From the sequence record MN871445.1: 64,000 nt of DNA; one strand, 5' to 3'. How positions within the stretch are numbered: the stretch's first letter is position 1; every line of letters begins with the position of its first letter. Made by a program: the position numbers and the translations under genes. A model generated the notes under the pieces. It did not search any database. It saw only the letters and a program-made list of their open reading frames with translations, and was not told where the DNA came from. Positions 320 to 57,118 of the stretch are shown here, one piece after another.

Positions 320-808
320 ATGTCGCTAATCATAAAAAGAACCGAACATGGTGGGCTGATAGATAATTTAAGAGGCCACCACATCGGGGCTAAACTGACA
401 TTAAACTCAGTACGCCATCACAACTGGGAGGCTCGACGACTTAACCTAAGAGACCTCATCACAATCTGTTTTCAAGCAGGTGATAGAACCGTGCGTATCG
501 TCGACACCACTTTATCGATTGATACTCTAACTCCCTGGCCAGGGTTTTATGAACTGCCGGCCCTCTATCTGGGAGTGGTCAGGGATGAAGAGTATTACAA
601 TGGCTGGAACATAGCTGGGCGTTTAAGTATATTGTTGAACGTTCCACTTCCCGGTCCAAGCGGCGGCGAATATGCCTTCAATGATACCCAATACCCCTAT
701 CTGGTAACCCCGCGGGGCGACTATACTGAACTCTGCATAACCGGTGCAATCGAATGCGCCAATGGGGACATCGGTCTGTATTTGCGGGATTTTCCATATT
801 CACCGTAA
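320..808 (+). CDS. hypothetical protein
   Basis: 162-aa ORF with AGGA RBS, followed by a terminator hairpin. Confidence 0.7.
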   Translation: MSLIIKRTEHGGLIDNLRGHHIGAKLTLNSVRHHNWEARRLNLRDLITICFQAGDRTVRIVDTTLSIDTLTPWPGFYELPALYLGVVRDEEYYNGWNIAGRLSILLNVPLPGPSGGEYAFNDTQYPYLVTPRGDYTELCITGAIECANGDIGLYLRDFPYSP

Positions 809-850
809 CGGCATAGGAGGAGGCGCAAGCCTCCTCCTTTTATGTTGTCC
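808..850. terminator. bidirectional hairpin with CATA/TATG flanks
   Basis: acggcata-ggaggaggc-gcaa-gcctcctcc-ttttatgttg, between convergent genes. Confidence 0.8.
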
Positions 851-857
851 TTTTATT

Positions 858-1190
858 TTATTTCGCCTCGGGCAAATCTAAAGTCTGCCCAGCAAATTGA
901 TGAGTACAATCACTGAGATATTGAATTTTACCATCGGTAATAAAACTATGGCATACTTTATTAATATCTTTCGTCGTATCATCAAATTCATCGGGATTAT
1001 CTGATGGTTCTGTCCAGGTCACTAATACTGACGGCTGGAATGTCGGTTTATCCACATCTCCATTAAACAGCCATTGTGGTTGGGTCGTACCACCGGCACG
1101 CACCTGGTGGCGATGACCACAACCAACGCACATAAATGTGTATCCCAACATCTTACCTGTTGCATCATGGAAAGCTTTTACTCTAGCCAT
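858..1190 (-). CDS. DUF6527-like small metal-binding protein
   Basis: CxxC..H, W.FNG...PTF.PS and CH.FI.DG.I..L.DCTH pattern recalled for this phage/bacterial family. Confidence 0.6.
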   Translation of the reverse strand: MARVKAFHDATGKMLGYTFMCVGCGHRHQVRAGGTTQPQWLFNGDVDKPTFQPSVLVTWTEPSDNPDEFDDTTKDINKVCHSFITDGKIQYLSDCTHQFAGQTLDLPEAK

Positions 1191-1208
1191 AAAACCTCCG
1201 GGAGATTA

Positions 1209-1490
1209 ATGATGTTAGAAAAATTAAAGACAATGCTATTCGGCCATAAACTTGTCACATATTCTCCACCAAAGTCCATTAGAATTATTACAGTAAATGA
1301 GACCCAATTGATTGTATCCTTAGTTAGGATGCGACATATTCGTTCTAAGAGGCCTGGGGTCTATCATAATGGGGATTGGTGGCTACGAGTCCATCCTGCC
1401 AATAATTGCGGACCTAAGATAAATTACCCCGGTTACTGGTCATCTATTCAGGCTGCCTCCCAATACTATTCAGATTATCTGGCGGAGTAA
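1209..1490 (+). CDS. hypothetical protein
   Basis: GGAG RBS directly before ATG 1209; start moved from 1074. Confidence 0.65.
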   Translation: MMLEKLKTMLFGHKLVTYSPPKSIRIITVNETQLIVSLVRMRHIRSKRPGVYHNGDWWLRVHPANNCGPKINYPGYWSSIQAASQYYSDYLAE

Positions 1491-1495
1491 TTACC

Positions 1496-1810: not shown

Positions 1811-1813
1811 CAA

Positions 1814-2389: not shown

Positions 2390-2430
2390 AAACCATCAAA
2401 TAAAATAATTATAAACCTATATCACTTCGA
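2388..2430 (+). promoter_or_regulatory. early (virion RNAP) promoter
   Basis: aaaataattataaacc-TATATCAC, close to the phiKZ early consensus TATATTAC; near-identical copy at 9079-9120. Confidence 0.75.
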
Positions 2431-2469
2431 TGAATAGGTACCTTACTTTACTTTTTTGAGGAGAGCATT

Positions 2470-5473: not shown

Positions 5474-5533
5474 GTATGATACGGTGCCAAATAGCATCTT
5501 TTTTTCTGAAGATTGAGGCAAGAGGCTAACTCA

Positions 5534-5842
5534 ATGAAAATTACTTTCTCGGAACTGTTAATGAATTGGGCACTTACCCTGGTTATTTTACTCACCCTTC
5601 CTTTGAATGCCTATATGGCTTCTCGAGGATTGGGAGCAACCAGTCAAGTGTTTATCGTGTTGTTTTATTTGTGTGGGGTGTTGTTTTCGTTTACGTTGTG
5701 CCGAAACAAATACCGCCAAGAAACCTCATTCAGCTCAGCTGTCTGGTTATCAATATTTTGGTTTGTCGTTACGGTAATCACCACCATCAGCGCAACCCGT
5801 TTCTATTTGTATCCGACATCAACAACACAACAAATTCAGTAG
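5534..5842 (+). CDS. small multi-pass membrane protein
   Basis: GAGG RBS; three hydrophobic segments. Confidence 0.65.
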   Translation: MKITFSELLMNWALTLVILLTLPLNAYMASRGLGATSQVFIVLFYLCGVLFSFTLCRNKYRQETSFSSAVWLSIFWFVVTVITTISATRFYLYPTSTTQQIQ

Positions 5843-5851
5843 TGACGAGTG

Positions 5852-5928
5852 GCTAGGTATTGGGGATAAATCTCCGATACCTAGCTATTTATGCCGTCGA
5901 CGGCATAAAAGGGAGGCCGAAGCCTCCC
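5852..5928. terminator. two back-to-back terminators around a 22-bp palindrome
   Basis: hairpin ctaggtattgggga-taaa-tctccgatacctag, then palindrome tttatgccgtcgacggcataaa (5888-5909), then gggaggc-cgaa-gcctccc. Confidence 0.8.
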
Positions 5929-5933: not shown

Positions 5934-6452
5934 TTACAGTGAGCCCAGATCGGTTTCCGGAGCTACCGAGGCAACAGTAACCGCCTGAGTTACGGTGATT
6001 ACCACAGTGCCGCTGAAGGCGTAGTTGGTTTCCGTTGCGGCTACGGTGAGGGTATACACTTCACCGGAGGTTACCACTGCGGAAGTAATAACAACATCAT
6101 CCGCGGCCAGACCCAGACCCAGAACGGAATTAACGACCGCCAGAAGATCTTCGGCGCTGGAGGTATCGGTCAGTACCGGAGTTCCGGCCCACGCAAACGT
6201 AGCGTTAGCTACCGCCAGTACGTCGCTAACATAGGCGGCCAGGCCCTTACGCACGTAGTTATACGTGGTCGGGTCTTTATACTTGGTGCTGTCCACCGGC
6301 GACAGCACAACCGCCGCGTCGTGATTTTCGAGCGCAGATGCTTGGACCGCAGACAGAGTGAACTGGTCGCGCAGCGCATCGTAGTTCGGGTTTTTGGTCG
6401 CGATGAGGTCTTTGACGATTTCAACAGGAGATTTGGACCAGGTAATAGCCAT
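5934..6452 (-). CDS. putative virion structural/decoration protein (beta-rich, Ala/Val/Thr-rich)
   Basis: S.vEiv.DLI...N and T.Y.YVR pattern typical of small jumbo-phage virion protein families; host-like optimal codons. Confidence 0.55.
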   Translation of the reverse strand: MAITWSKSPVEIVKDLIATKNPNYDALRDQFTLSAVQASALENHDAAVVLSPVDSTKYKDPTTYNYVRKGLAAYVSDVLAVANATFAWAGTPVLTDTSSAEDLLAVVNSVLGLGLAADDVVITSAVVTSGEVYTLTVAATETNYAFSGTVVITVTQAVTVASVAPETDLGSL

Positions 6453-9651: not shown

Positions 9652-9672
9652 CTAGTTATGAGGATTAAAGAA

Positions 9673-10110
9673 ATGACACTGCAAGATAAAATGAACAAAC
9701 TGTTTACTGCCGGTTTTACTATCACCACTGATGGGAAGAAAACAACGTTTACCAAAACGGTGGAAGGTGACTTAAATGATGCGATCGACAATCTTCTGAA
9801 TACGGGTTTCGTACAAACGAATTCTCCAATCCATGAGGTGCTTTGGGATAATTATTGTTCAGCATTAGTACCTTGCATAAAACAGTTGTTTGGTAGCAAA
9901 CACGAGACAGCGCCAACGTTCGAGTTTATTTGTAAGTTTGGGTGTTACGAGGCCCTCCGTAGAGGTGATTTGGTTTACCTAATAAATAAATTTCCTACCG
10001 CTTACGACAGTGAAAAGCAATTTGCCGAGGAACTACACAGAGTGTTACCGTCAGAGTACTATATTGCTGATATTATCAATAACACCATCCGTATTGCGCA
10101 GGCGGCATAA
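9673..10110 (+). CDS. early protein, paralog family A member 2
   Basis: GAGG RBS; NKLFTAGFTIT...KTVEGDLNDAI N-terminus. Confidence 0.7.
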   Translation: MTLQDKMNKLFTAGFTITTDGKKTTFTKTVEGDLNDAIDNLLNTGFVQTNSPIHEVLWDNYCSALVPCIKQLFGSKHETAPTFEFICKFGCYEALRRGDLVYLINKFPTAYDSEKQFAEELHRVLPSEYYIADIINNTIRIAQAA

Positions 10111-10272
10111 AAGGGAGGGGCTAACCACCCCTCCCGGTTTTACGCACGTTTCGCATCCCGACACATTAGTCGGCACCGCAGTTCCAGTTTCACGACAACC
10201 ACGTACATTACGCCAGAACAACAGCAATTTCGGTGAAAGCTAGGTTCGGCTAACTCACACCTCAGCATATTA
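10104..10272 (-). ncRNA. candidate structured small RNA (unclassified)
   Basis: Intergenic gap. Manually identified stems use G-U pairs only on the minus strand. AAAAATTAC and TATG lie upstream on the minus strand and a hairpin+TTTATGCCG lies at the 3' end. Confidence 0.35.
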
Positions 10273-12831: not shown

Positions 12832-12885
12832 AATAACGGGTGGGCATATACCCACCCTCTTATGCCATCAAAAGGAAATCTTACT

Positions 12886-13481: not shown

Positions 13482-13561
13482 TAATACGAGATCCGTAAGG
13501 GGGTGGGCATTAGCCCACCCCCTCGACCAGCGCTTTAATTTTTTATTTTTTGGAGCCTAAC

Positions 13562-15924: not shown

Positions 15925-16020
15925 CGTTATCCGAAAACACCCGTAGGGTTTTCGGGGGAAAGGGGGTTTAAGAAATTGGGAAGGGAAAGGATTGTTAAGG
16001 AAAGGGAAACCTTTTTTATT
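15925..16020 (+). other. hairpin plus purine/G-tract-rich non-coding element
   Basis: ccgaaaa-ca-ccc-gta-ggg-ttttcgg, then GGGGG aaa GGGGG..GGG aa GGG aaa GG..GG aaa GGG. Confidence 0.6.
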
Positions 16021-16039
16021 TTTGATTCGGAGAAATACA

Positions 16040-16393
16040 ATGTATTCTAGCTTTGTAGAGGCGGATAATAAATGGGATTTCCTAAGAAACATTCCGATGG
16101 TTGGTTTTCATATACCCAACGATAATAGAACGGTCATGTACACCGATGTGAGTATGTTCACCACGCAATTAATTGGTGGGTATATTCAAAATGCTTATTT
16201 GGTTATACCTATTAATGCGTTGATTCATTTTGAAGAAAAAGAAGGTGAGTTCCTTCGTAAATACTTTGAACTGTATAAGACTTGTATAGGCGACTTATGC
16301 ATCATCAGAGTATCTCTCGCTGATTACCCACCGATTGTATTTAAAGGCATCATTGACCACTGGCAGCTGGTCAATTGCACCACCTATAACTAA
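16040..16393 (+). CDS. hypothetical protein
   Basis: GGAG RBS before ATG 16040. Confidence 0.65.
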   Translation: MYSSFVEADNKWDFLRNIPMVGFHIPNDNRTVMYTDVSMFTTQLIGGYIQNAYLVIPINALIHFEEKEGEFLRKYFELYKTCIGDLCIIRVSLADYPPIVFKGIIDHWQLVNCTTYN

Positions 16394-16436
16394 CAGCATA
16401 AAAGAGAGGCTGTTAAGCCTCTCCTTATGTCGTCTA
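16394..16436. terminator. bidirectional hairpin with CATA/TATG flanks
   Basis: cagcataaaa-gagaggc-tgttaa-gcctctc-cttatgtcg, between convergent genes. Confidence 0.8.
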
Positions 16437-17276
16437 TCGTTGAGTACCCAGAAAATTGCGGATATGTTTGACGTGAGCAGATTGAGATTGCATCATGGCA
16501 ACTTTGTACCAGGTATTTTTGAGGAAGTCTTTGTAATTCTGGTTAGCGTCACTATAACCCTCAATGACGCTTTTAAAAATACCAAAATCAAAACCGCCGA
16601 CGATTTCACCCTCATTCAGTTTGACGATAAGGTGTTTGTAGATATACGCTTTAGCCGCATATTCAACTAATTGGGCGAATTCACCGTATACTGCGGGTCG
16701 AAGAGTGGATAGTTCGTCATCATAAGTCAGCCAGCATGATAACCAACACCGATCGGGAATACGTACTTGGTCTTCAACCAATACCGTGTTGACGTTTACT
16801 AGAGATACGCGTGCAGAACCCACGATGGGCATGTTGGCATAGGCGTTCCATAGTGCGGCTCCCGTAACCAATACCCCAGCATTACCGGAACCCTTTTGTT
16901 GCATCTGGTCAAACCACGGGTTGTAGTTAGAATACGCAATGGAATAACCGTATCCGTAAGACACCCATTCTGGAGAGATGATTTGACGGCCTTGGAGGTA
17001 TTCTGACGGGATGATGTATAAACTGCTACGTTCGTCAGGGATCTCTCTTGGAATCGATGTGAGATTGATTAATGCCCGCTCAGAGTACTTTAAGTTAATA
17101 TCTCGCATGACCCTCGAACGAATCACTTTATTTTCGATAAAATGATCGATATCTGGGACTACGTGGGAAAACAACCGAACGTTATCCAGGAAAGCACGCT
17201 CCAGGATTTCCTCGGGGATGTCTGAATTATGTAAGCTATTTAAGGCGTAGCTGATCGCCGACGAAGTGGCTGGCAT
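16434..17276 (-). CDS. conserved phiKZ-like virion structural protein (neighbour of phuZ)
   Basis: 280 aa, GGAGG RBS, divergent from phuZ as recalled for related phages; function not identified. Confidence 0.6.
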   Translation of the reverse strand: MPATSSAISYALNSLHNSDIPEEILERAFLDNVRLFSHVVPDIDHFIENKVIRSRVMRDINLKYSERALINLTSIPREIPDERSSLYIIPSEYLQGRQIISPEWVSYGYGYSIAYSNYNPWFDQMQQKGSGNAGVLVTGAALWNAYANMPIVGSARVSLVNVNTVLVEDQVRIPDRCWLSCWLTYDDELSTLRPAVYGEFAQLVEYAAKAYIYKHLIVKLNEGEIVGGFDFGIFKSVIEGYSDANQNYKDFLKNTWYKVAMMQSQSAHVKHIRNFLGTQR

Positions 17277-17369: not shown

Positions 17370-18341
17370 ATGACTGACCGCACTCTTTCTTTATACGGCG
17401 CCGGTGGCGCTGGCAGTAATCAGGTTAAACCATTTATTGGTGTAAGTACTCTCCCAGGCTATGCTAAAATGGCCTGTACGCTTATCGACACCAGTGATAG
17501 CAACATCACCGATGGCGTACCGGAAGAGAACGTATTTATCCTGGACGGCGTGGATGGTTCCGGCAAGGTCCGCGCCCAGAACTATGAGGTCATCCTCAAC
17601 ACTACCCGTCAAATTCTTCTTCAGCATCCCTTCGGTGACGTCGCAGTCATCGTGTTTTCTGCAAGCGGCGGTTCCGGTTCGGTGTTCGCCCCAATCATCA
17701 TGCAGGAAGCCATCGCCAAAGGCGTGCCAATTATTGGTATCGTTATTGGTACCCACGGCACTGCTAAAGAAGCGGAAAACACAGTTAATACACTGAAGTC
17801 CATGGACAACATGGCACGTAAGAACGGCGTCCCGTTTGTTATCATCTATGAACGCAACCGTCGCGATTACGGCCGCAAAAAGGTGGACGAAGCAATCCGC
17901 GCAGCCATCCTGCAAATTTCACTGCTGGTTGGTACCATGAACAACAACTCGGGCCTGGACAGCGCCGATATCAAAAACTGGGTCTATTTCCAGTCGGTGA
18001 CGGATGTCCCACCACAATTGGCTTTGCTGGATATTATTCTTAATGAAGAATGTTCTAAGGATATCAGCGATCCTATTTCGGTGGCCAGCATCTATGAAGA
18101 AGGGCACGATGCTGAGTTTCCTTTTGCTTCTGACTACGGTTGCGAAGGGTTTAAAGCCAGTGGAATTGCCCCGGAACATAAAGAAGTTCATTTCGTCATT
18201 TCTATCAGTGATGTGCCCCAGCTCTTCAGTATGGAAAAAGAGCAGGTCGACCGGTATCGTGAGGTTAAAAACTCACGAGTAGTCCAATCATCCCTCACGG
18301 ATAAAAACGACAAAACTACCGACGACGGCATGGTTCTTTAA
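17370..18341 (+). CDS. phuZ: PhuZ phage tubulin
   Basis: YGAGGAGSN, DTSDSN, DGSGK and the tubulin signature SGGSGS; C-terminal DDGMVL tail. Confidence 0.95.
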   Translation: MTDRTLSLYGAGGAGSNQVKPFIGVSTLPGYAKMACTLIDTSDSNITDGVPEENVFILDGVDGSGKVRAQNYEVILNTTRQILLQHPFGDVAVIVFSASGGSGSVFAPIIMQEAIAKGVPIIGIVIGTHGTAKEAENTVNTLKSMDNMARKNGVPFVIIYERNRRDYGRKKVDEAIRAAILQISLLVGTMNNNSGLDSADIKNWVYFQSVTDVPPQLALLDIILNEECSKDISDPISVASIYEEGHDAEFPFASDYGCEGFKASGIAPEHKEVHFVISISDVPQLFSMEKEQVDRYREVKNSRVVQSSLTDKNDKTTDDGMVL

Positions 18342-18345: not shown

Positions 18346-18392
18346 CAACATAAACCACAGGGAGAGGCTAATAGCCTCTCCCCATATGCCGC
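18346..18392 (+). terminator. hairpin with CATA/TATG flanks
   Basis: caacata...gggagaggc-taata-gcctctccc-catatgccg. Confidence 0.75.
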
Positions 18393-18479
18393 TTTACCAA
18401 AATACCAATAATTAACTAGAACGCGTTTTAGGGTAGTTAAAAAAGACATCTTCGATTAATGGTAGGACGGATACAAAAA

Positions 18480-18500
18480 CTCTTTACATTTATATTACTA
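18480..18500 (+). promoter_or_regulatory. early promoter
   Basis: exact TATATTAC at 18491-18498, ahead of the 11-gene array. Confidence 0.7.
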
Positions 18501-23477: not shown

Positions 23478-23512
23478 ATTTGCCTCTCCTTCGGGAGAGG
23501 CTCTTTTTTTCG
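23478..23512 (+). terminator. intrinsic terminator
   Basis: gcctctcc-ttcg-ggagaggc followed by a T-tract. Confidence 0.8.
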
Positions 23513-25813: not shown

Positions 25814-25870
25814 CGGCATAGATGGAGAGGCTTTTTCGGCCTCTCCATCTTAGGGGGCTTTATGCCGCGG
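25813..25870. terminator. bidirectional hairpin with CATA/TATG flanks
   Basis: gacggcata-gatggagaggc-tttttcg-gcctctccatc...tttatgccg. Confidence 0.8.
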
Positions 25871-26945
25871 AAAAATACGGTGAGATATGTTCCAACAAAT
25901 CTTGGTTAACATACCCCGAGTCATCTCCGCGAATACCAGTAAGTAATCGTTCTTGGCTAATCCGTTTTAATGCAATCTGAATATCTACTTCAGCATGTTT
26001 GTTGGCTACATGTCCGGTACTCATGTCAAGGACCAATAACGTTTCCAATAATGGAATTTCAGCAAATGTCGTTACCCATTTATCTTGGGTAGTGGGGAGA
26101 ACCCCAGTCAGTACTGTTTTTCTAACGTTCTGAGAAAACACTTGCGGGAATGTGTCCAGTAATCCAGAAAAACTTCTAGGTTTGACTGTGGCCCAATCCA
26201 CGTAAGTGGAAATAACTTTATCTACGAACGTATATGGAGTAGCTAAATTGACGATTTGTTTCTTTTGAATGGGTAAGGTATCGATACCCACAACTTGCTT
26301 TCGTACTAAATTAATAAGTGCAACGTCACACTGAGACGGAAGCATGCCTGGAAGTACGTACTGATAAATAAAGTTAGCTGGAGTTCCTCGCATCCCTTCA
26401 GGGCGCTGTAATTGCTCACGTAACCACATCCGATACATCAAACCTAACACCGGGACGTCGATACTGAATACGGCATATCCGGTAGAATATCCGTGGTTAT
26501 CCGGGAGATGTAAGTCTAGTGAAGTATAATCGTTACGAATAACTTTCACTGGGGATTGTGTTTTCCAATCCAGACTCAATCTATTTGGATCTACGAATGA
26601 CTCAACGGCAATGTAGGCCTCTTTGGATGAACGCCCATAAAAACTTCCAGTGGGTGGAATATAGCCTCGGTTCGTCGGTGTGGTAATACCTACAGCCCGG
26701 CAGGCAGCATCGTAACGATCGGTAATTAAATCATAATAAACAGATGCCGGATGATACCACCCATCGGATAGGTTATCCAACAATTTAATTAGAATGTGTC
26801 TGCTATCTACCCAACCACCTGATTGTTGATAATATTCCCGCATGCGCACGAAGTTGTTATTCAATCTTTCTTTTATATATCGCATAGGGGTTAGGGTGGG
26901 TCCGCCCACCTGTGGGCCTTGTACCGCCAAGACGTCCGTAAACAT
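25860..26945 (-). CDS. conserved virion protein adjacent to chimallin (phiKZ gp52-like)
   Basis: GGAG RBS before ATG 26945; syntenic between the polymerase and chmA. Confidence 0.6.
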   Translation of the reverse strand: MFTDVLAVQGPQVGGPTLTPMRYIKERLNNNFVRMREYYQQSGGWVDSRHILIKLLDNLSDGWYHPASVYYDLITDRYDAACRAVGITTPTNRGYIPPTGSFYGRSSKEAYIAVESFVDPNRLSLDWKTQSPVKVIRNDYTSLDLHLPDNHGYSTGYAVFSIDVPVLGLMYRMWLREQLQRPEGMRGTPANFIYQYVLPGMLPSQCDVALINLVRKQVVGIDTLPIQKKQIVNLATPYTFVDKVISTYVDWATVKPRSFSGLLDTFPQVFSQNVRKTVLTGVLPTTQDKWVTTFAEIPLLETLLVLDMSTGHVANKHAEVDIQIALKRISQERLLTGIRGDDSGYVNQDLLEHISPYFSAA

Positions 26946-27087
26946 GGGTCGGCTCCAATTAATGTAAAAAAATACACGGTTATACATATACTGTAGAGGA
27001 AGTACCAACGACCTCTACGATTCCACACGGAGTCGGAAAGGGTTGTGATGTCGTTTGGTTATCTTGGCACTGGTACGGGCTAAACCA

Positions 27088-27164: not shown

Positions 27165-27195
27165 TTGTAAATTTACATAAACGTATATTACTTAG
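27165..27195 (+). promoter_or_regulatory. early promoter P2 of chmA
   Basis: aaatttacataaacg-TATATTAC-ttaggtg. Confidence 0.75.
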
Positions 27196-29207: not shown

Positions 29208-29221
29208 GTCTGAAGTAACGT

Positions 29222-29260
29222 CATAATAGCGGGAGGGGTAAAACCCTCCCGCTTTATTTC
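29222..29260 (+). terminator. hairpin after chmA
   Basis: gcgggagggg-taaaa-ccctcccgc-tttattt. Confidence 0.75.
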
Positions 29261-29300
29261 CCACAGCTTCTTTTTTTAGTTAAGCAAACAAAGGGTAATC

Positions 29301-31517: not shown

Positions 31518-31597
31518 TGGTGTGTCTGGGAGGAGGGGCTTAGGCTCCTCCTCTTTTTTTACGGATTACCTTTATTTTTTGTCTGTGGAGCGTACTT

Positions 31598-34585: not shown

Positions 34586-35281
34586 ATGGCCGACCAACCA
34601 ATTAAACGCCAAACGTACCTCGATGACCTGCGAGCTAAGCTGTTCGCTAAGCCACTGCAGGGAGGTACTAAACGTCCTATTCTGACTTTTGGTTATGTTA
34701 CTCGGAAGTACGATACCAACTGCGCAGAAATCAAAATCAAAACTAACGTCCCGAACGATGCAGATAACGGGCAGATTAAAGTGGTCGTACCCGTGCCGGA
34801 TCTGTTTGGTTATTTCCGAGCAATCCAAAATATGGCGACCCAATCCGGAAAACAGGAACGTAGTTTCCGGGTGTATTCTACCTTCGCAAAAGGCGGTAAA
34901 GTAGATCCGTATCCGTCGGCCATGATCCACCTGGGCAAAGAAGACGACGGTCGCATGTATATTGCGGTGACTAAAAAGAACCGACCGAACATTAAGTTCT
35001 ACATGTGTCCGGACGAAATGTATCGCCTGGTTGTAAATGGCGAAGAAATGACCACCGAACAAACTTACGCCGAATACGCGCTGGGTTATATTGACATGAT
35101 TCGCGGTATTTATCAGACCATCATGGACCGCGATTACGTGCCGTGGGAAAACCCGCATAACAACGGCGGTGGCGGTCAACGTGGCAATGGTGGAAATGGC
35201 GGTAACTGGAATGGGGGTGGTAACTCCAATTCGGGTGGCGGTCAATCAAACAACAGTTACGATGATGATGTTTGGGGTTGA
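34586..35281 (+). CDS. chmC: ChmC / Imp6-like nucleus-associated RNA-binding protein (Whirly-like fold)
   Basis: directly upstream of the gp68-like subunit and picA, as in PhiPA3/Goslar; Gly/Asn-rich disordered C-tail. Confidence 0.75.
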   Translation: MADQPIKRQTYLDDLRAKLFAKPLQGGTKRPILTFGYVTRKYDTNCAEIKIKTNVPNDADNGQIKVVVPVPDLFGYFRAIQNMATQSGKQERSFRVYSTFAKGGKVDPYPSAMIHLGKEDDGRMYIAVTKKNRPNIKFYMCPDEMYRLVVNGEEMTTEQTYAEYALGYIDMIRGIYQTIMDRDYVPWENPHNNGGGGQRGNGGNGGNWNGGGNSNSGGGQSNNSYDDDVWG

Positions 35282-35283
35282 CG

Positions 35284-35322
35284 TCATATACGGGAGGGCT
35301 TTTGCCCTCCCTTTATGCCGTA
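35284..35322 (+). terminator. hairpin with CATA/TATG flanks
   Basis: cgtcatatac-gggagggc-tttt-gccctccc-tttatgccg. Confidence 0.8.
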
Positions 35323-35382
35323 TTACCTAAAAGGTAGTTTCTTACAGACGGTCGCCATGTTATACGTAGTAAAAGGATGCAT

Positions 35383-35412
35383 TCAAAAAACTTAAACACC
35401 TATATTACTATT
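35383..35412 (+). promoter_or_regulatory. early promoter
   Basis: aaaaaacttaaacacc-TATATTAC. Confidence 0.78.
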
Positions 35413-35438: not shown

Positions 35439-36986
35439 ATGCAAATGACACTAGCTCCGTATTCTAACGGAGTGTCTGAAATCACAGTCAGTCATAGGCA
35501 GCAATCCATTACGTTTAAAGGTACGACGTATAATCGCACCATCCTCAAAGAAAAAGAAGCATTCTTTCAGGACATTAATGCGTATTGGGATAGTTTGCCC
35601 ATGTCGACCCAGGATGCCATATGGGCCACGTATTTGGAATTGGATCGTGCATTTGTTTCAGAAGAAGGTACCAACAGTGTACACAAAACACTCCATCAAC
35701 TACTCCTGCAATTGTATCAGTACCACAGCATGGACAGCTTTCGGTATTGGATACGTTTCAAATCCCGTGTCAAATATCCCCCCGATTTAAAAGAAAAATA
35801 CAGTCCAGAATACCCCAAAGAAATGACCTACCTGCTAGAAGACTATCGCGGTCTATTGGCATTGACTTTGGGTTTGCGGATCGTGCTACCAATTGTGTTA
35901 CGTTATACCTTGGCGGTAGAGCGTGAACAAAAAGGAAAGTATAAAGAGTTCATGTGCCTCAAGTTGCTTGAGGGTACTGAGTTAATGAATTCACCGGAAA
36001 TGGCACAGATCAAAGGTTACGTTACCGCGGCCGCTAACGTCAATGAGAAACCGCCATCAATGTCGGCGATACTGGGTGGGTTGGGGTCTACACAAATCCC
36101 AATGTTCTTCCTGGCGCACGCCATCATTCGGCGGGTTATCGTTAGTGAGCTGAAAACCGAAGGGGACCCAGTTAACATAGTTTCGAATGTGTGGAACTTT
36201 GTTTCTCAAATGGATTTGGATAAACGTTTCGGTGGGGCTACAAAGGATAAGAACCCGACTGGCGCAGTGGCTGAGGATGATAAACAATCAGTCGCTGAGA
36301 TTTATAAGAATAAGGAACGTATCTCTGCGTCTTCACCAGTGACGGAAACTGTGTTTGTTGGTATGTATCTAAGTGCCAAGAAATACATCGATCCTACCAT
36401 GGATGATGATCTAGCCGAAATGCTTTGGGCCCATCATAAACAACTGAAATCGTTCGACCCTGAACCTTGGCAGCTGGTGTTGATGGGTTGGGTGTTGGCA
36501 CCACAAGTAACGTTTAAAACCAGGGACTATTTAGAACCTGAGGATCGCAATCGGGGGATTGCTATCGCACAAGCGTTATTGTGGCATTGGGGATTCCCGC
36601 AGCTGGCTGCGTTGTTGACCGCTACAAGAGCAGTACCCATCCACTTCGAAGGAGCGTCGCAATCCAGTGCACAACTTTCCATCATGAAGCGAGCCTGGCG
36701 TGGACCTACCGAAGAAATGGTGCGTGAAATTAATGAACAATACCCACATCACAAGTTGATACGCAATAAGTTCGATCCAAATCAATCGAACTATGCGGTG
36801 GTAGCCATCAATGAGTTGTTCTCCATGGTGGTCTCAGGGGATTGGGATTTGAACTGCCCGCGGTCGTTGATTGATGTTTGTGGGATGTCTGAAGATTTAT
36901 CGGGATATGCCCCACCGACCGATCTGAAATATCAGCTGTATGATTTTGTTATAAAGAACAACCGCCGTAAAAGCGGAAAACAGTAA
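35439..36986 (+). CDS. nvRNAP promoter-specificity (sigma-like) subunit, phiKZ gp68-like
   Basis: 515 aa, early promoter, position between chmC and picA, LWHWGF.QLA C-terminal block. Confidence 0.75.
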   Translation: MQMTLAPYSNGVSEITVSHRQQSITFKGTTYNRTILKEKEAFFQDINAYWDSLPMSTQDAIWATYLELDRAFVSEEGTNSVHKTLHQLLLQLYQYHSMDSFRYWIRFKSRVKYPPDLKEKYSPEYPKEMTYLLEDYRGLLALTLGLRIVLPIVLRYTLAVEREQKGKYKEFMCLKLLEGTELMNSPEMAQIKGYVTAAANVNEKPPSMSAILGGLGSTQIPMFFLAHAIIRRVIVSELKTEGDPVNIVSNVWNFVSQMDLDKRFGGATKDKNPTGAVAEDDKQSVAEIYKNKERISASSPVTETVFVGMYLSAKKYIDPTMDDDLAEMLWAHHKQLKSFDPEPWQLVLMGWVLAPQVTFKTRDYLEPEDRNRGIAIAQALLWHWGFPQLAALLTATRAVPIHFEGASQSSAQLSIMKRAWRGPTEEMVREINEQYPHHKLIRNKFDPNQSNYAVVAINELFSMVVSGDWDLNCPRSLIDVCGMSEDLSGYAPPTDLKYQLYDFVIKNNRRKSGKQ

Positions 36987-38531: not shown

Positions 38532-39917
38532 ATGAGCTTACACACTGAGTTAGTCGAAAAGTATCAGGACCTGCTAACCAGCATGGGACTAACTGTCGAC
38601 CTCCCCTACGTGCGTTTGGCTGAAAGCAACGGCGTTGAAACACCGGTTACGGTGCATGATAAACCGCTGGTTTTACCGACGCTCGATCTTCTGAAAGAAA
38701 ACAACTGGGATAGCCTGCAGCCATTCCATCCGCTGGCGGAAAACCCACTGCGGGGAGAATCAGTTATTCTCAAGAAACTTCGGGTTCTGGTGGCATTTCA
38801 TGCGACTAGCGTTATCCTGACCCTGGCTGAAGAACTGCTGACCATCGCGTCAGATGGCGCACTACAAGCTAAGTTATCTCCGAAGGCCAGTGAGTTTCTT
38901 TCTCACGTAGGTGACGTCGATGCGAAAACTCTGAAAGCAATGGACTCGGTACGGAAGAAAGTTACCGTACTTGGTGACCATCGTTTAGTTGGGTTCTATT
39001 TTAGTCGTCCCGGCGACCAACGTAAAGACAGTTACACCCGCCTGTGTCGCGTAGACTTTCCAATCTTCGATGCGCTGGCCGATAAAGAACCAACTATCTT
39101 CGGGGTGACTATGCGCCATCGAGATAAGAAAGCGATCCTTGGCGTATTGGATTGGCTAATCTATCCAAAACACGACGAAGATGCTGACCTGGCTGGGTTC
39201 TATAACGCCGGTACCAGAACCTTAAACGCACCGTATTTTGTTACGCTGATGTCGGCGTTCAAAAAACTGATGCATGAATTGAACAGCAAAATCAAACTGT
39301 TCAAGAAAACTATTCCGGATGTCGTCGCAGAAACACTGACCGATCTGAGCTGGGCGGATCTCATCGATGATATCGATCATTATCGCGATGTCATCCCGAC
39401 TCTTCCGGGTAATGAAGGTACGGTCTCCAGTCATCCTAAAAATGATGGCGCTGAAGTCAAAGGAACCCCAATGCTAAACATCAATACGCCGATTGGCGGT
39501 CAACGTGAAGAACCAACTCAGGTAACGCCACCGCCGGTTATCCGCCCTGCGCAGCAACAAGCTACTGAAGAAAGTGACGATGGGTATATCACGAATAGCC
39601 TCGGCATTCGTATGCCTAAATCACCCAATCTGACGCCTGCCCGCGTACCGATGCCGGTCCAAGCACCAACCCCGTACGTACCACCGGTCCCCACCTATGT
39701 AGCGCCACCGACAGTACAAGCGCCACCAGTTCAGGCGCAGGTACAATCGAACGGTAAAGTACGGATGGGCGATCTGATGCCAGGCGTGCAACAGCAACAG
39801 GCCGGTGGTTATCAACCACCTCAACCGTTGACTGGGCGTCAGGCATTCCGAGCCCAACAAACTGCACAGCAGGCTATCATCACCCCGGGGTTTATCCAAC
39901 CCCATCGTCGCTGGTAA
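38532..39917 (+). CDS. conserved core protein (phiKZ gp70-like) with Pro/Gln-rich tail
   Basis: FHPLAENP.RGES block; about 130-aa low-complexity C-terminus. Confidence 0.7.
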   Translation: MSLHTELVEKYQDLLTSMGLTVDLPYVRLAESNGVETPVTVHDKPLVLPTLDLLKENNWDSLQPFHPLAENPLRGESVILKKLRVLVAFHATSVILTLAEELLTIASDGALQAKLSPKASEFLSHVGDVDAKTLKAMDSVRKKVTVLGDHRLVGFYFSRPGDQRKDSYTRLCRVDFPIFDALADKEPTIFGVTMRHRDKKAILGVLDWLIYPKHDEDADLAGFYNAGTRTLNAPYFVTLMSAFKKLMHELNSKIKLFKKTIPDVVAETLTDLSWADLIDDIDHYRDVIPTLPGNEGTVSSHPKNDGAEVKGTPMLNINTPIGGQREEPTQVTPPPVIRPAQQQATEESDDGYITNSLGIRMPKSPNLTPARVPMPVQAPTPYVPPVPTYVAPPTVQAPPVQAQVQSNGKVRMGDLMPGVQQQQAGGYQPPQPLTGRQAFRAQQTAQQAIITPGFIQPHRRW

Positions 39918-39920: not shown

Positions 39921-39955
39921 AACGGCATAAAGGGAGAGGCTTCGGCCTCTCCCTC
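39921..39955 (-). terminator. hairpin with TATG flank
   Basis: on the minus strand: gggagaggc-cgaa-gcctctccc-tttatgccg. Confidence 0.75.
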
Positions 39956-39977: not shown

Positions 39978-40322
39978 TTACACACTACCAAATGTAGTGT
40001 TATAAGCAGAAGCCAGCTGCTGTAATGTGGTTTGATTGGGTATATACAGCGTTCGTATTGACGAATTAAATTCCCTAAAATGATACATGTAATTTAGTCG
40101 CATAATAAGCCAATACATGTAAGGAGAATACCCCAATGATTTTAAATAAAGTTCTGGGCGATATTCGTAAGTGTAAGCATCTTCCGGGGTAATGGAAAGT
40201 TCCGTTGTCGAAGCGAGGCTACGAATCCATTCGATATGGTCTTCAAATAATCGCCTAAACCCCAACAGGTAATAAACATCATTTCCTTGGTCAGCTGCTT
40301 TACTAATAAGCGATACGGTCAT
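39978..40322 (-). CDS. LysM-like baseplate wedge protein (T4 gp53-like)
   Basis: YEYRPELYL..LG....YWLIMRLN......F......LYIP pattern. Confidence 0.65.
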   Translation of the reverse strand: MTVSLISKAADQGNDVYYLLGFRRLFEDHIEWIRSLASTTELSITPEDAYTYEYRPELYLKSLGYSPYMYWLIMRLNYMYHFREFNSSIRTLYIPNQTTLQQLASAYNTTFGSV

Positions 40323-40337: not shown

Positions 40338-40368
40338 GCCAAAATAATTATAGACCTATATTACTAGA
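40338..40368 (+). promoter_or_regulatory. early promoter
   Basis: aaaataattatagacc-TATATTAC. Confidence 0.8.
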
Positions 40369-44396: not shown

Positions 44397-44496
44397 AGCG
44401 TCTAGGGGGTGGGTAAATCCCACCCCCAATTCTGTTGTGATTTTTACAACACCCCATAATTGTAGGACGCTATGCTTCAATGAGGATATTCTTAGC

Positions 44497-46154: not shown

Positions 46155-46520
46155 ATGTCAATCGATATTACCGAACAAGATTGGAGAGAAGTAGATGTAA
46201 CGACAGACCGCCTTGCTGCAACGGCCTGCCCAGTTGATGATGACCTTTACGATGAAATTGAACATTTCATCGAATTCATTAAACCGATAGCCCATGCCAG
46301 AACCCCTTTTCGATTGGGTTCATTATATCGACAATGGCGTGATTATCGGGGACAGGATATTATCTATTCTCTGTCCCTCAACGAGCTTAAGCGAGTCTGG
46401 ACTGCAATAGCGGTGGTTTGTAACTCTAAGTCCTTACCATCGTATTGCGGCCAAATACCTGAACAATGTATTCTTTACGATAATGCGACTCACCGCATTG
46501 TTCGGTATCTTAAAGATTGA
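46155..46520 (+). CDS. hypothetical protein
   Basis: GGGG RBS; flanked by hairpins. Confidence 0.6.
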   Translation: MSIDITEQDWREVDVTTDRLAATACPVDDDLYDEIEHFIEFIKPIAHARTPFRLGSLYRQWRDYRGQDIIYSLSLNELKRVWTAIAVVCNSKSLPSYCGQIPEQCILYDNATHRIVRYLKD

Positions 46521-46524: not shown

Positions 46525-46568
46525 TCGGCATAAAGGGAGAGGCTTCGGCCTCTCCCTGTTTATGTTGC
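46525..46568. terminator. bidirectional hairpin with CATA/TATG flanks
   Basis: tcggcataaa-gggagaggc-ttcg-gcctctccc-tgtttatgttg. Confidence 0.8.
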
Positions 46569-46571: not shown

Positions 46572-46898
46572 TTATTTTTTGGCTTTTTTCTTCTCTTCAG
46601 CTAATGCCCGCTCAAGCTTAGTTTGTTCACTCTCAGCTTGGTTGACTCCCTCAGAGTTAGCCAATTCGCATTCCTGCAGTATCCACTCGATCATGTGTCT
46701 GGGTAAAGCCATGAACTCAGTGAACCCCAACCCAAACAAATCCCAAACACGTTGCGCTCTATACTCACGCATCCTCAACTGCCACCCAGTATGTACGCCC
46801 AGAGCTTCGCTCGGGTGTACTAATTGACTGGCAAATGGGGGTATCTTACCAGACCGATCATCGAACAACCCGTAGGTTGTATCGTAGGCTTCCATCAT
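46572..46898 (-). CDS. tail-assembly-chaperone T-like segment (T4 gp51-like); probably translated through a -1 frameshift from the upstream gene
   Basis: VWDLFGLGFTEFMALP..I.W motif; no SD before the ATG; the frame is open back to and beyond the slippery site at 47054-47060. Confidence 0.6.
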   Translation of the reverse strand: MMEAYDTTYGLFDDRSGKIPPFASQLVHPSEALGVHTGWQLRMREYRAQRVWDLFGLGFTEFMALPRHMIEWILQECELANSEGVNQAESEQTKLERALAEEKKKAKK

Positions 46899-51433: not shown

Positions 51434-52039
51434 ATGTCTGAAGATGCAAAACTCACAATCACGGATGATGTTGGGCAGGCCTCAGGTCAAGATGTTATCC
51501 GAGAAGAAACGCCAATCATCAGCCCGGCTAGCGTTGCCCCGGCGGCTACCATGGTTAAGGTAATGACTGCTGAACCTCAACCAGTCCAGCAGGTCGGTTC
51601 TATCATCCGGCTCACTGCTGAAATGGCCCGCTACGAAGAAAGCATGAATATTCGTCGTAGCATCGACCCGGTGGAGGGCGGTAAAAATCAAGTAAAATTC
51701 CTACGGGCAATTCAGAATCTGGTATATACCCCAGATGCTTCTGATTTTGTGGTGGGGATGGATTACCTGATGAAGAAAATGTCCGAAGATGCCAACGGCC
51801 TATTTAATGATCGTACCGCATTTCGTTTTTGGGACCAGATGAAACTGGCCAGACTCGAGCGCCAAGAAATAGAAAATCTTTGGCGTCTCCTGGTATCGGT
51901 AACCCAAGCCAAGGACCGCAAACAGGTACTGGAAAAACAAATTGACCTGGATAAGGCCCTGGGATACATCAAGGACTCTAAAGTCAGCGAACGTCTGCGC
52001 GCGTACATCGCCAAGATTAGTAAAGTTAATCTTGGATAA
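51434..52039 (+). CDS. conserved helical hypothetical protein
   Basis: 201 aa; followed by a bidirectional terminator. Confidence 0.7.
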   Translation: MSEDAKLTITDDVGQASGQDVIREETPIISPASVAPAATMVKVMTAEPQPVQQVGSIIRLTAEMARYEESMNIRRSIDPVEGGKNQVKFLRAIQNLVYTPDASDFVVGMDYLMKKMSEDANGLFNDRTAFRFWDQMKLARLERQEIENLWRLLVSVTQAKDRKQVLEKQIDLDKALGYIKDSKVSERLRAYIAKISKVNLG

Positions 52040-52042
52040 TAT

Positions 52043-52080
52043 GCATAAAAGGGAGGGCGAAAGCCCTCCCGATATGTTGT
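52043..52080. terminator. bidirectional hairpin with CATA/TATG flanks
   Basis: gcataaaa-gggagggc-gaaa-gccctccc-gatatgttg. Confidence 0.8.
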
Positions 52081-53817
52081 CTAGTGTTTATGATCTTCTT
52101 TGAAAGATTCTAATAACTGGTCGAGTGTAGGTACACCAAACAACGTACAGCATAATTCTACTGCATTCACTTGTGCCGACATTAAATTAATACCTGCACG
52201 TCGTTGGTCTATTTCTTCTAACCCCTCAATCCCGCACAATTCCCGTTCAGTAGTATCTTTAGAAATGTTACCTAACAAAACACCATTAGGATAACTCGAT
52301 CTCACGTCGAGGTCAGCTATGTGGGCTCGAAGGTATGACCTAAGTTCAGGCAAATCTTTAAACGCTGGGATGCCATTATCTACCATCATGTAGGTAGGTA
52401 ACATAACAATCCATCCCGTCAAGTCCAATGTATCGTCATCTAATTCCGTTTGTACTGTTGATGAACCAGTACCAATCACCTTACCGTGACCCAGATAGAA
52501 GAAATGGAGGTCATTTACCAACATAACGGGTTGGCGGTTATATTGGGAATACTCAGAGATACCCACCAGGGTTGGCAACATCTGACTGATGTCTTTGATA
52601 GTTTCATCAAGTATCTCGGTAACGATGTCATCGAATAGTGCGTATGCACAGTAAACATCCCGGTAATGGGTTTGCATGATTTCGTGCCATTTAGCACTAC
52701 CGTCTTCGACGTCTTCCAGTAAAGGGAGTTTAACATATAGCTTACCTATCTTGGAGCCGACCTCACGTTTTACTACGGCATCAAGGCCGTAAGAGAAATC
52801 TTGTCCGCCTGCTAAACGTACCCGTCGATAAGTACACATACCGCAGATGATGGTAAATGAGGCGGTGCAATAAAGCATGTGCCATTGATCTGCTGGTTTA
52901 ATTGTGACTTCACGGCCCGACGCCGCCTTTTTGCGTTTATTCCCTTCTTCATATTTGCACCTTCTGAAGTTCTTCGGCACCCGGGGGTCACACAGCACGT
53001 CTTTGGGATCTACCCCGAAGTCTTCCAGTACGCGCATAATAACAGGGACGTCGAAGTCCTGGTTCCAAATTTCTATAATATCGGGTTGCCATTCGTGGGC
53101 ACGCTCGAACAACGCTTGGATGATTTCAACGGGGCCGTTAACAATGCGTATCTCAATGTTTTCCAATGGGATACGTTCTTTAATTTTTGGTCCTATTTCA
53201 GAATCATCGTACAGATGCTTTTTAATAGATGCTCGAATCTCTTCTTCGGCATTTGGCGAAGCTCCATACCACCCGCGGTCTACTGCTAGAATTGCTTTAT
53301 CCTGGAATGATAACTGACCAGTGATCGGATACTGGTCTTCAGTAAACATGTTGGTTTCTAAGTCGAGCACAGCAACGGTATTATTGCTACGTGCTTTTGG
53401 CCATTGTTGTTGGTAGTTATGTTTCAAAATGCAGGTGGTATTGATGTCCGCACCGTATAAATACGGAGACTGCGCTAATTTGCGTAATCCCCCATTTGGG
53501 TCGCCATACCCCAGCGCCTGAACAATTCGTTTAGGCATGTTGATTTGTGTTGTAGAGAATTCATTACATTTTTTTCGTTCTTCAAATTCTTTCTTGTCAG
53601 AATAATTTTGATATTCTTTTTTGGTTACCCAAAATTTACGTTGATAATCACCCCAGAAACTTAAACGGTTCTCGGTGTGACCATCTTCAAAAAACAATCT
53701 TTCTTTAATGGTTAGTAAATCATGAGGTGTGCCGTCTAAAGCCTCGCTGTAAACGACATGCTTGCACTCATAACCAATTACCCCAGGGACATCGAAACGT
53801 GGACGTGGTGGTGCCAT
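52081..53817 (-). CDS. split family-B DNA polymerase, 3'-5' exonuclease plus motif A subunit (phiKZ gp82-like)
   Basis: ExoI VLDLET, ExoII WNQDFD, ExoIII YALFDD and motif A DLDVRSSYPN. Confidence 0.88.
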   Translation of the reverse strand: MAPPRPRFDVPGVIGYECKHVVYSEALDGTPHDLLTIKERLFFEDGHTENRLSFWGDYQRKFWVTKKEYQNYSDKKEFEERKKCNEFSTTQINMPKRIVQALGYGDPNGGLRKLAQSPYLYGADINTTCILKHNYQQQWPKARSNNTVAVLDLETNMFTEDQYPITGQLSFQDKAILAVDRGWYGASPNAEEEIRASIKKHLYDDSEIGPKIKERIPLENIEIRIVNGPVEIIQALFERAHEWQPDIIEIWNQDFDVPVIMRVLEDFGVDPKDVLCDPRVPKNFRRCKYEEGNKRKKAASGREVTIKPADQWHMLYCTASFTIICGMCTYRRVRLAGGQDFSYGLDAVVKREVGSKIGKLYVKLPLLEDVEDGSAKWHEIMQTHYRDVYCAYALFDDIVTEILDETIKDISQMLPTLVGISEYSQYNRQPVMLVNDLHFFYLGHGKVIGTGSSTVQTELDDDTLDLTGWIVMLPTYMMVDNGIPAFKDLPELRSYLRAHIADLDVRSSYPNGVLLGNISKDTTERELCGIEGLEEIDQRRAGINLMSAQVNAVELCCTLFGVPTLDQLLESFKEDHKH

Positions 53818-53923
53818 GTCAATTACTCCAATTCTTTTTTGATTTGTGCCCAATTACATCATCGACATCACTCGTGATAAATTACTTCGTTGAATTATGT
53901 GTCGGCAGCCTGAGGAAACTACC

Positions 53924-55279: not shown

Positions 55280-55285
55280 GGAACC

Positions 55286-55804
55286 ATGACCATGGCCAAT
55301 TATGCACTGACCCAGCTGGCACGTAAACTGTTGACCCTGGCAGGCTCAGCCCCGAAAGACAGCCGTTGGGCCTCTAACGAAACCACTACTACTGTGCGGG
55401 ATGAAAACACCCGCATGGAAAACTTACTGGCTGCCGGGATCGCCTATAGCCTCCCCCTTCCGCCAGATGCCGTGCCGTCTATTGACGTATTTTTCGGTCA
55501 GGCTTACGGTACCAAACTCACCGCTCTTGTTTCTGAGATTTGTGAGCAGCGGGTACTTAACCCAGAACTTATTATTCTGGCCGTAAAACAAGCCTGGAGT
55601 TTCCGTTATGCTCAAACGCATGACATCAATATTCTTTTGCTGAACGGCCTGATGAAATTTAATTCCATCGGCGGGCTGAGTAATACTTACGAATACGCGC
55701 TGGGTGAATACCAGAACGATTATTCAATGCTGTTCACCATTCTTAGCCAAATCAAATCTACGGTGCAGCCGTATTTCGCCGAGGATAGCCAAGATGCAGA
55801 ATAA
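55286..55804 (+). CDS. putative virion protein
   Basis: AAGGA RBS; inside a structural operon. Confidence 0.6.
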   Translation: MTMANYALTQLARKLLTLAGSAPKDSRWASNETTTTVRDENTRMENLLAAGIAYSLPLPPDAVPSIDVFFGQAYGTKLTALVSEICEQRVLNPELIILAVKQAWSFRYAQTHDINILLLNGLMKFNSIGGLSNTYEYALGEYQNDYSMLFTILSQIKSTVQPYFAEDSQDAE

Positions 55805-57077
55805 TGACATTTATGGGTTTTCGGATACCATCTCCATGGAGTCGTTTGACAACATGGGTGGGTTTGAGCCCCTTGAAGCCGCGTCCACCCTAAATGACTT
55901 GGTCACGACGGCCAACCAAATTCAGGGTATTCGCGACAGCATTCTCAGTGATGGTGTATCCAAAACAGATGCGCTGGCGCTGGAGAGTTTAAATCCGGGA
56001 TTCTTTCCGCAGTATGTGCCAATGCATTCCTTTACCCAGATGCGGTCTCATACTAACCTCACCGTCACGCTGGAATCCATTAAATCGTGGACCACGATGT
56101 CGATTGCGAATATGGTTAAAGCGCTGTATCGTTTTCTGATGTCTTGTGTCAATTGGGTTAAAAATGCAATCAAAGGTTTCTTTGGTACTGGGAAAGATGC
56201 TAAACGTGTAATTTCCAATACGGAAGCCACGGTAAAAGCAACGAATGAAATTGTAACCCAGACTCGGGGAGCGACGGATAGTAAAACCGATGAGGCATTC
56301 CACAAAGCCAAAGAAAAAGCAAAACTATTAATTTCTGATCACTACACCCAACTGATGCGTCGAATGGTGTCTGACCGCGGTACTGAGAATATGGTTCGGC
56401 ATTTGCGCGGTCAACTACATACCGCCTACGCTAAACTGGACGTATTAACTGAGAAATACGTCCATGCCTTAGATATTTCCAGTAAAGGTGAAATTAACTA
56501 TCAGGAAGCCAACAGTATTTTTGCTGATTTGGCGAGCTTTAATCCGGGAAGTTTGTTGGACCTGGATTTAGAGTTATCTTATTTTGACCTAAAACAAAAG
56601 CTATCTCACGTAAATGGTTCGGTTTTGGTTCAATCGCTGTGGGATTCTTTGAAACAGCAGAACATGAAACGGGCATCTTGGGAAGTGAAAACCAGTGATG
56701 TCATTTCCGGCATGTTGCAGTTGACTACTCGCTTGGAAGAACTTGCCGACGACATCATCGATCCCGAGCTGGACACCACAGTCCCTACGGTAGTTGATTT
56801 CTCTAGCAAGGTACGTAATGCACCGGAGGGTATTACTCCTAACCTGGCTTTAGCAAGTCAACGGCTCACAGAAGGGTTTACTGTAGCTCAGCATGGTATT
56901 GGAATTTATGTTGAGTTGTTGAAAGCTTTTATTACCCTGACCGACCTGGGGTGGAAAGCCTCGAAAAGTATGATGGGCGACATTGCCACTAAAGCAAAAA
57001 CCGATTGTACGGAGTACGCCGCAGTCATCAAAGATATCGAGCAACGTTTAAAAACAACGCTACAAAAACAAAGTTAG
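55794..57077 (+). CDS. internal head protein with S/A-x-E propeptide sites
   Basis: ISMES and ALES in the first about 70 aa; GAGGA RBS. Confidence 0.65.
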   Translation: MQNNDIYGFSDTISMESFDNMGGFEPLEAASTLNDLVTTANQIQGIRDSILSDGVSKTDALALESLNPGFFPQYVPMHSFTQMRSHTNLTVTLESIKSWTTMSIANMVKALYRFLMSCVNWVKNAIKGFFGTGKDAKRVISNTEATVKATNEIVTQTRGATDSKTDEAFHKAKEKAKLLISDHYTQLMRRMVSDRGTENMVRHLRGQLHTAYAKLDVLTEKYVHALDISSKGEINYQEANSIFADLASFNPGSLLDLDLELSYFDLKQKLSHVNGSVLVQSLWDSLKQQNMKRASWEVKTSDVISGMLQLTTRLEELADDIIDPELDTTVPTVVDFSSKVRNAPEGITPNLALASQRLTEGFTVAQHGIGIYVELLKAFITLTDLGWKASKSMMGDIATKAKTDCTEYAAVIKDIEQRLKTTLQKQS

Positions 57078-57078
57078 A

Positions 57079-57118
57079 CAACATATTGGGAGGGCTTTCG
57101 CCCTCCCTTTTATGCCGT
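57079..57118. terminator. bidirectional hairpin with CATA/TATG flanks
   Basis: caacatatt-gggagggc-tttc-gccctccc-ttttatgccg. Confidence 0.8.

Follow-up and report, generated by a model that had tools for sequence, protein, structure and literature searches.

Hairpin-TATGYYG elements at gene ends of the jumbo phage KpHz_2 are probably phiKZ-type transcription terminators

What does the GC-rich hairpin bearing the heptamer TATGYYG do at the ends of genes in Serratia phage KpHz_2? The window analysed here, a stretch of 64,000 nucleotides, is identical in sequence to bases 1-64000 of the phage genome (MN871445; 270,429 bp). A first-pass annotation of this stretch had listed 13 sites with such hairpins and proposed that they act as terminators specific to the phage RNA polymerase, as stems for RNA processing or stability with CATA:TATG pairing, or as TATG start sites coupled to terminators. 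By analogy with terminators of related phages, we read the elements as the signals that end transcription in a nucleus-forming jumbo phage of the phiKZ type, with a probability of about 0.8. Read so, they are a phage-specific version of a known stop signal, with a mirrored stem, a tail flavour free of U-runs and heavy two-sidedness, and not a new kind of promoter.

The hairpin census covered perfect GC-rich stems of at least 7 bp with at least five G:C pairs and a loop of 3-9 nt. The window held 28 such hairpins and the whole genome 114; each was read in both orientations, giving 56 and 228 oriented flanks, respectively. TATGYYG was found within 12 nt 3' of the stem in 17 of the 56 window flanks (flank shuffles: mean 0.23, maximum 3) and in 58 of the 228 genome flanks (0.98 in shuffles). 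The recurrent element of the first-pass annotation is therefore real and enriched over shuffled controls. A GC-rich hairpin was present at 13/13 of the listed sites; the strict heptamer accompanied eleven perfect-stem hairpins and the imperfect hairpin 5850-5887 on at least one strand, while the hairpins at 12838 and 29228 carried partial tails only. The genome has 242 TATGYYG sites. Folding of the 36 nt upstream of each placed 59 of them below the first percentile of random positions, where 2.4 were expected, and among the remaining 183 sites only 10 lay outside called genes. The word TTATGCCG occurred in 12 copies in the window versus 2.8 in dinucleotide shuffles. A generic terminator scan detected the strongest elements, and zero matches to Rfam families were obtained in the window.

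The stems at the 13 listed sites were perfect over 7-12 bp, with RNA folding free energies of about -13 to -26 kcal/mol, and in KpHz_2 the G-rich arm comes first. Alignment on TATG yielded a consensus of a C-rich stem, then TT or RA, TATG, Y, Y, G, and T. The onset of TATG was 2-3 nt past the last stem pair in 41 of the 58 genome units, the base after the heptamer was T in 39/58 flanks, and the exact string TTATKYYGT was present in 19/58, the others starting with RA or another spacer. Two flavours of the tail can be distinguished, TTTTATGCCGT, which satisfies the 5-of-8 T rule for a U-run, and RATATGTTGT, which has no such run; about one-third of the tails start with RA instead of TT and hence lack it. 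With these tails, and with few window hairpins using a T7 run, the earlier wording that the motif stands in place of a long U-tract was fair. A subset of the hairpins was stereotyped, with stems GGGAGGGC, GGGAGAGGC, or GGAGGAGGC, loops GAAA, TTTC, or TTCG (mostly 4 nt), a left flank of GCATAAAA or CAACATATY, and a right flank of TTTTATGCCGT or RATATGTTGT.

The arrangement of the tails indicates that the element is directional. The perfect palindrome of 22 nt at 5888-5909, pointed out in the first pass, was confirmed and consists of two one-directional units, 5850-5896 and 5901-5928, which abut tail to tail; a similar pair recurs at genome positions 165514-165588. Since in both back-to-back pairs each tail lies 3' of its own hairpin, the functional unit is a hairpin followed by a tail, 5' to 3', and the apparent CRRCATA-hairpin-TATGYYG symmetry is two units on one shared hairpin. 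Strict tails were found at 28 of the 42 sides of hairpins located between convergent genes. At the ends of single genes they occupied 13/54 terminating sides (plus 17 partial tails) and 9/54 opposite sides (plus 12 partial), and in hairpins inside genes only 4 of 66 sides; the contrast between gene-end and intragenic hairpins was strong (Fisher P = 1e-7). Many elements are two-faced even where a single gene ends, and these probably block transcription from the other side.

The objects for the analysis of selection were the elements aligned with their orthologues in Klebsiella phage Eowyn, which is annotated and 98% identical to KpHz_2, and in KpGz_1, which is 87% identical. The elements occupied orthologous gene ends in all three phages. 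Compensatory changes of stem pairs were observed at 12848, 13511, 15819, 25835, and 2922; in the stem at 12848, GGGTGGG/CCCACCC was changed to GGGTAGGG/CCCTACCC. TATG was unchanged at every varied site, the two YY positions alternated between C and T, and the final G varied once (at 12848, A in KpHz_2 versus G in KpGz_1), while the spacer of 2-3 nt drifted freely (TT, AA, GA, CA, CC). The stem is thus kept for pairing and the tail for its sequence, which is under purifying selection.

The gene content of the window is that of a phiKZ relative. The MN871445 record has no annotation and lists Klebsiella pneumoniae as the host. Encoded in the window are homologues of phiKZ PhuZ, DNA polymerase gp50, chimallin gp54, gp69, gp70, and helicase gp75, as well as four of the five subunits of the non-virion RNA polymerase (nvRNAP), homologous to phiKZ gp55, gp68, gp71-73, and gp74. 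The fifth subunit, a homologue of gp123, is encoded outside the window at genome positions 87200-88825 (E = 3e-78). Outside its own small group, no chimallin is more than about 25% identical to that of KpHz_2, which therefore branches deeply among the nucleus-forming jumbo phages.

The RNA 3' ends of phiKZ were mapped by Oxford Nanopore Technologies (ONT)-cappable-seq (Putzeys et al. 2024, PMC10914365), and 61 intrinsic terminators were predicted, with the stem-loop CCYCCCC-loop-GGGRRGG followed by BY-TTATKYYGT (PMC10914365). Terminator motif A of phage 201phi2-1 (n = 59) closely resembles the phiKZ motif, and eight 201phi2-1 terminators, picked across motifs, stop transcription in uninfected host cells (PMC11512511). 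Like the terminators of these two phages, the KpHz_2 elements consist of a GC-rich stem-loop, here of 7-12 bp, with the tail (T)TAT-G/T-Y-Y-G-T on its 3' side, and recur dozens of times in each genome, at gene ends and in part as bidirectional elements; like phiKZ, KpHz_2 has a two-polymerase system and a phage nucleus. Terminators with a conserved downstream sequence, as suggested in the first pass, are thus supported by analogy to the phiKZ and 201phi2-1 3' ends, by selection on the tail, and by gene-end location. The proposal that they are specific to the phage polymerase found no support, since the 201phi2-1 terminators also act in the uninfected host. In phiKZ the stem begins with its C-rich arm, the mirror image of the polarity in KpHz_2, and stems of the form CCYCCCC...GGGRRGG are not those of its elements. 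The one-third of tails that begin with RA rather than TT, the enterobacterial host, and a chimallin only about 25% identical to that of phiKZ are further differences.

The comparison was extended to 50-kb syntenic samples of other phages. The most enriched 5-mers after hairpins were TTATG and TATGC in phiKZ and Deimos-Minion, and TTTAT and TATGT were enriched in 201phi2-1. The tail was found behind hairpins in the samples of phiKZ, 201phi2-1, KpGz_1, and Erwinia phage Deimos-Minion, and in Escherichia coli phage Goslar it followed imperfect hairpins, including both annotated terminators. The tail is common to at least five chimallivirus genera, and the stems are lineage-specific. Survival of a seven-letter tail across shell proteins of only about 25% identity and full replacement of the stem points to a sequence-specific contact with the phage transcription machinery. 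Canonical intrinsic terminators share with the KpHz_2 elements a stable GC hairpin right after the stop codon and, in one flavour, a tail with a T-rich start; hairpins shared between convergent genes resemble canonical bidirectional terminators with an upstream A-tract, and 201phi2-1 relatives of the element stop the host polymerase in vivo. Where canonical terminators have 7-9 U in a row, the KpHz_2 elements have TATGYYG, with the G and the pyrimidines kept across phage genera, and the RATATGTTGT flavour is entirely devoid of a U-run.

Several points weigh against termination. Its assignment to KpHz_2 leans on the analogy with phiKZ and 201phi2-1, and in ONT 3' ends termination and processing are not fully separable. 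The full phiKZ consensus, with up to three mismatches, gave 0 matches in the 270 kb of KpHz_2 because the stem polarity is mirrored, compared with two matches in the 50-kb sample of phiKZ and four in that of 201phi2-1. The bias of strict and partial tails to the terminating side of single-gene ends was not significant (30/54 versus 21/54, P = 0.12), possibly owing to gene-call errors or to a role unrelated to the nearest gene. Finally, bare TATGYYG was not avoided inside genes (ratio 1.2 in both orientations). Because it is not avoided there, the heptamer would be inert without a hairpin, having no detectable cost and no noticeable effect.

The elements of the window are listed below, followed by two hairpins of a contrasting class; plus and minus refer to the strands.

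809..847, two-faced element between convergent genes 320-808 (plus) and 858-1190 (minus): minus tail TATGCCG 809-815, hairpin 815-838 (10 bp, loop GCAA), plus tail TATGTTG 841-847; in the Eowyn orthologue TATG-Y-TG is kept, and the spacer and one Y differ.
5850..5896, plus, one-directional unit ending the plus gene 5513-5842: long imperfect hairpin 5850-5887 (free energy -26.5 kcal/mol), then TTTATGCCG at 5888-5896.
5901..5928, minus, one-directional unit ending the minus gene 5934-6452: hairpin 5911-5928 (7 bp), with the tail TATGCCG at 5901-5907 on the minus strand, reading TTTTATGCCG.
10103..10135, hairpin 10113-10135 after the plus gene 9658-10110, with GGTTTTAC on the plus side.
12838..12867, plus, hairpin 12838-12857 with the partial tail TATGCCA at 12861-12867; in KpGz_1 the stem of the orthologue differs by a compensatory change and the tail is complete, TATGCTG.
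16394..16432, two-faced element between convergent genes 15992-16393 (plus) and 16434-17276 (minus): tails 16394-16400 (minus) and 16426-16432 (plus), hairpin 16404-16423.
18346..18391, element 3' of the PhuZ gene (17370-18341): hairpin 18360-18382, tails TATGCCG 18385-18391 (plus) and TATGTTG 18346-18352 (minus, 7-nt spacer).
25814..25867, two-faced element between the DNA polymerase gene 23579-25813 (plus) and gene 25860-27008 (minus): minus tail 25814-25820, hairpin 25820-25850 (12 bp), plus tail TATGCCG 25861-25867 after a 10-nt spacer; KpGz_1 has the compensatory change AT to GA / AT to TC.
29219..29261, hairpin 29228-29253, 3' of the gene for chimallin, the nuclear shell protein: both tails are partial, TATTTCC (plus) and TATGACG (minus), with a T7 run about 20 nt downstream.
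35282..35320, plus, terminator at the tandem junction between 34586-35281 and 35439-36986: hairpin 35292-35311, tail TATGCCG 35314-35320, and TATGACG at 35282-35288 on the minus side.
39923..39954, minus, hairpin 39931-39954 between convergent genes 38532-39917 (plus) and 39978-40322 (minus): tail TATGCCG 39923-39929 on the minus strand only.
46526..46567, two-faced element between convergent genes 46155-46520 (plus) and 46572-46898 (minus): tails 46526-46532 (minus) and 46561-46567 (plus), hairpin 46534-46557; the element is repeated almost identically at genome position 91272.
52041..52079, cassette GGGAGGGC-GAAA-GCCCTCCC (52051-52070) between convergent genes 51434-52039 (plus) and 52081-53853 (minus): plus tail GATATGTTGT (TATGTTG 52073-52079) and a partial TATGCAT on the minus side.
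57079..57117, the cassette of 52041..52079 in the opposite orientation, between convergent genes 55704-57077 (plus) and 57110-60130 (minus): hairpin 57088-57107 (loop TTTC), tails 57079-57085 (minus) and 57111-57117 (plus).
23482..23510, plus, contrast class: C-rich arm first and an ordinary T7 run, without a TATG tail.
31529..31560, plus, contrast class: hairpin followed by TCTTTTTTT, without a TATG tail.

With about 14 elements in the window and about 60 in the genome, the unannotated record gains a terminator map that shows where genes end and operons are bounded. Often the element included the stop codon of the gene leading into it or of the opposing one, as TAA in CATAA or as its complement TTA in TTATG (10103-10110, 25860-25862, 57110-57112, and others). 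In such cases convergent genes are only about 40-50 nt apart, and the gap between them is entirely terminator.

Among the other explanations, the least improbable is that the tail provides a start site, with nvRNAP initiating at the G of its TATG after termination or independently of it; transcription would then stop and start anew between tandem genes and yield antisense RNA at convergent ones. Late promoters of phiKZ have the core TATG, whose G is +1, and lack conservation 3' of it (Yakunina et al. 2015), and in a recent structure a gp123 pocket binds TATG in the non-template strand, the pocket being incomplete in the transcribing complex (Chen et al. 2026). In the gp123 homologue of KpHz_2, at an overall identity of 32%, the pocket keeps five of its seven residues (F151, K158, H185, K190, H331), Y406 is replaced by W, which is still aromatic, and Y399 by T. 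The word itself seems to matter, as only one tetranucleotide was more depleted than TATG when genes were read on the sense strand (0.81, z = -12, synonymous-codon shuffle). Since the pocket is largely kept and the word is depleted in genes, TATG is probably a polymerase signal in KpHz_2 too.

As the role of the tails, however, initiation is improbable. The tails peak at convergent gene ends, where there is nothing for a promoter to drive, and YYG(T) is kept after TATG, which is not the case in phiKZ late promoters. The latter also lack an upstream hairpin (P119L reads TATGTAG, with no hairpin upstream), whereas in KpHz_2 every tail comes after a hairpin, and most point towards an opposing gene at its 3' end; an arrangement in which TATG lies upstream of, and co-directional with, the gene that it drives, with no other conserved bases, was not what the tails displayed. 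Hairpin-less intergenic TATGYYG is nearly absent (10 in 270 kb), and in phiKZ only four antisense RNAs have a defined start, versus 61 motif terminators. Finally, at the tandem junctions at 18360 and 35292 a separate TATATTAC box lies ahead of the next gene. The window contained four copies of TATATTAC (18491-18498, 27184-27191, 35401-35408, and 40357-40364), all on the plus strand, intergenic, and before a plus gene; those at 18491 and 35401 fall between the tail and the next gene. Genes downstream include those of chimallin and of the gp68-like and gp71-73-like polymerase subunits. The most enriched 7-mers upstream of genes genome-wide were TATATTA and ATATTAC (10-14 fold), often as ACCTATATTACT, and TATATTAC is the core of these enriched words. 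TATATTAC matches the phiKZ early promoter, and its sites are probably early promoters, used by the virion polymerase. The terminator-coupled starts of the first-pass annotation are not borne out by these data.

The words TTACC directly after tandem-junction terminators (TATTACC at about 35321-35327, CTTTACC at 18392-18398, and GATTACC at 31564-31570) resemble the phiKZ middle-promoter box AAAnTTACC. Sigma-70-like promoters were not enriched, with 36 found versus 45 expected. Depletion of CATA, considered as a sign that antisense promoters are avoided, depended on the null model (0.65 and rank 2 with a Markov null; 0.88 and rank 36 with the synonymous-codon shuffle) and was not relied on. By far the most depleted tetranucleotide in genes was GATC (ratio 0.37-0.42, z = -26), as might be expected if the phage evades a host enzyme specific for GATC.

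Still less credible is a role in RNA processing or stability, in which CAUA and UAUG would pair and lengthen the helix for a double-strand RNase or a binding protein, the 3' ends being produced by cleavage. Two-sided elements are common even at single-gene ends, where 21/54 opposite sides carry a strict or partial tail, and co-occurring motifs in 201phi2-1 lengthen the hairpin and act more strongly (PMC11512511). In KpHz_2, however, the two tails were at unequal distances from the stem in 13/13 two-sided elements, so CAUA and UAUG cannot stack onto the helix; in-register extension is ruled out, and pairing would amount to about 4 bp beyond an asymmetric internal loop. A continuous helix of about 20 bp of the RNase III type, built from flanks and stem, was formed by none of these 13 elements. 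One-sided units are numerous (5850-5896, 5901-5928, and 39923-39954 among them), and orthologues alter the spacer on one side without compensation on the other. The CATA:TATG-paired stems suggested in the first pass are thus not supported.

Least probable of all is an element acting at the DNA level, as a palindromic protein site, a cruciform signal for recombination or replication, or a selfish repeat tolerated at gene ends: about 13 copies do share an identical cassette of about 30 nt (GGGAGGGC, GAAA, GCCCTCCC, RATATGTTGT), and the loops at 13511 and 44416 are flipped between KpHz_2 and Eowyn, a DNA-level event, but compensatory stem changes keep pairing and not sequence, unequal half-site spacing and one-sided units are unlike a dimeric DNA-binding site, stems differ wholly between phage genera while the tail is retained, and all three phages have the elements fixed at the ends of orthologous genes.

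If the elements are terminators, each unit would comprise a stable GC-rich RNA hairpin, two or three variable bases, and TATG-Y-Y-G-(T), and would act in one direction. The hairpin would fold behind the polymerase while the tail fills the RNA:DNA hybrid and the region of the active site. The RNA 3' end is expected 7-9 nt past the stem, that is, on YYG, so the tail would stand in for the U-tract by making the complex slower or less stable, upon which the hairpin frees the RNA; retained on the transcript, the hairpin could then shield the 3' end. It is doubtful, though conceivable, that the elongating nvRNAP reads the tail sequence-specifically rather than merely meeting a weak hybrid; the idea arises because the tail is kept across genera and the TATG pocket is conserved. 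TATG might then have a dual role, meaning "start" in a fresh bubble and "pause and release", or stop and restart, just after a hairpin during elongation. Such a dual role, if true, would explain why the tail is kept across chimallivirus genera with unrelated stems and why loss of the U-run is tolerated.

The smaller class of terminators with a T7 run and without a TATG tail was represented by 23482-23510 and 31529-31560 in the window and at 100109 and 167896 in the genome. Each class might be used by a different polymerase or at a different stage of infection.

Elements at unrelated loci were in some cases identical over 30-45 nt (genome positions 39931, 46534, and 91272, and about 13 GAAA-loop cassettes), and the identity between unrelated copies can run past the tail, for example through GTTTATGTTGCCTTTTATT at 46558 and 91296. 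Such identity of distant elements suggests copying between sites plus selection. In two hairpins with unchanged stems the loops were inverted between KpHz_2 and Eowyn (ATTA versus TAAT at 13509-13512 and TAAAT versus ATTTA at 44414-44418), which looks like a small hairpin-mediated inversion at the DNA level.

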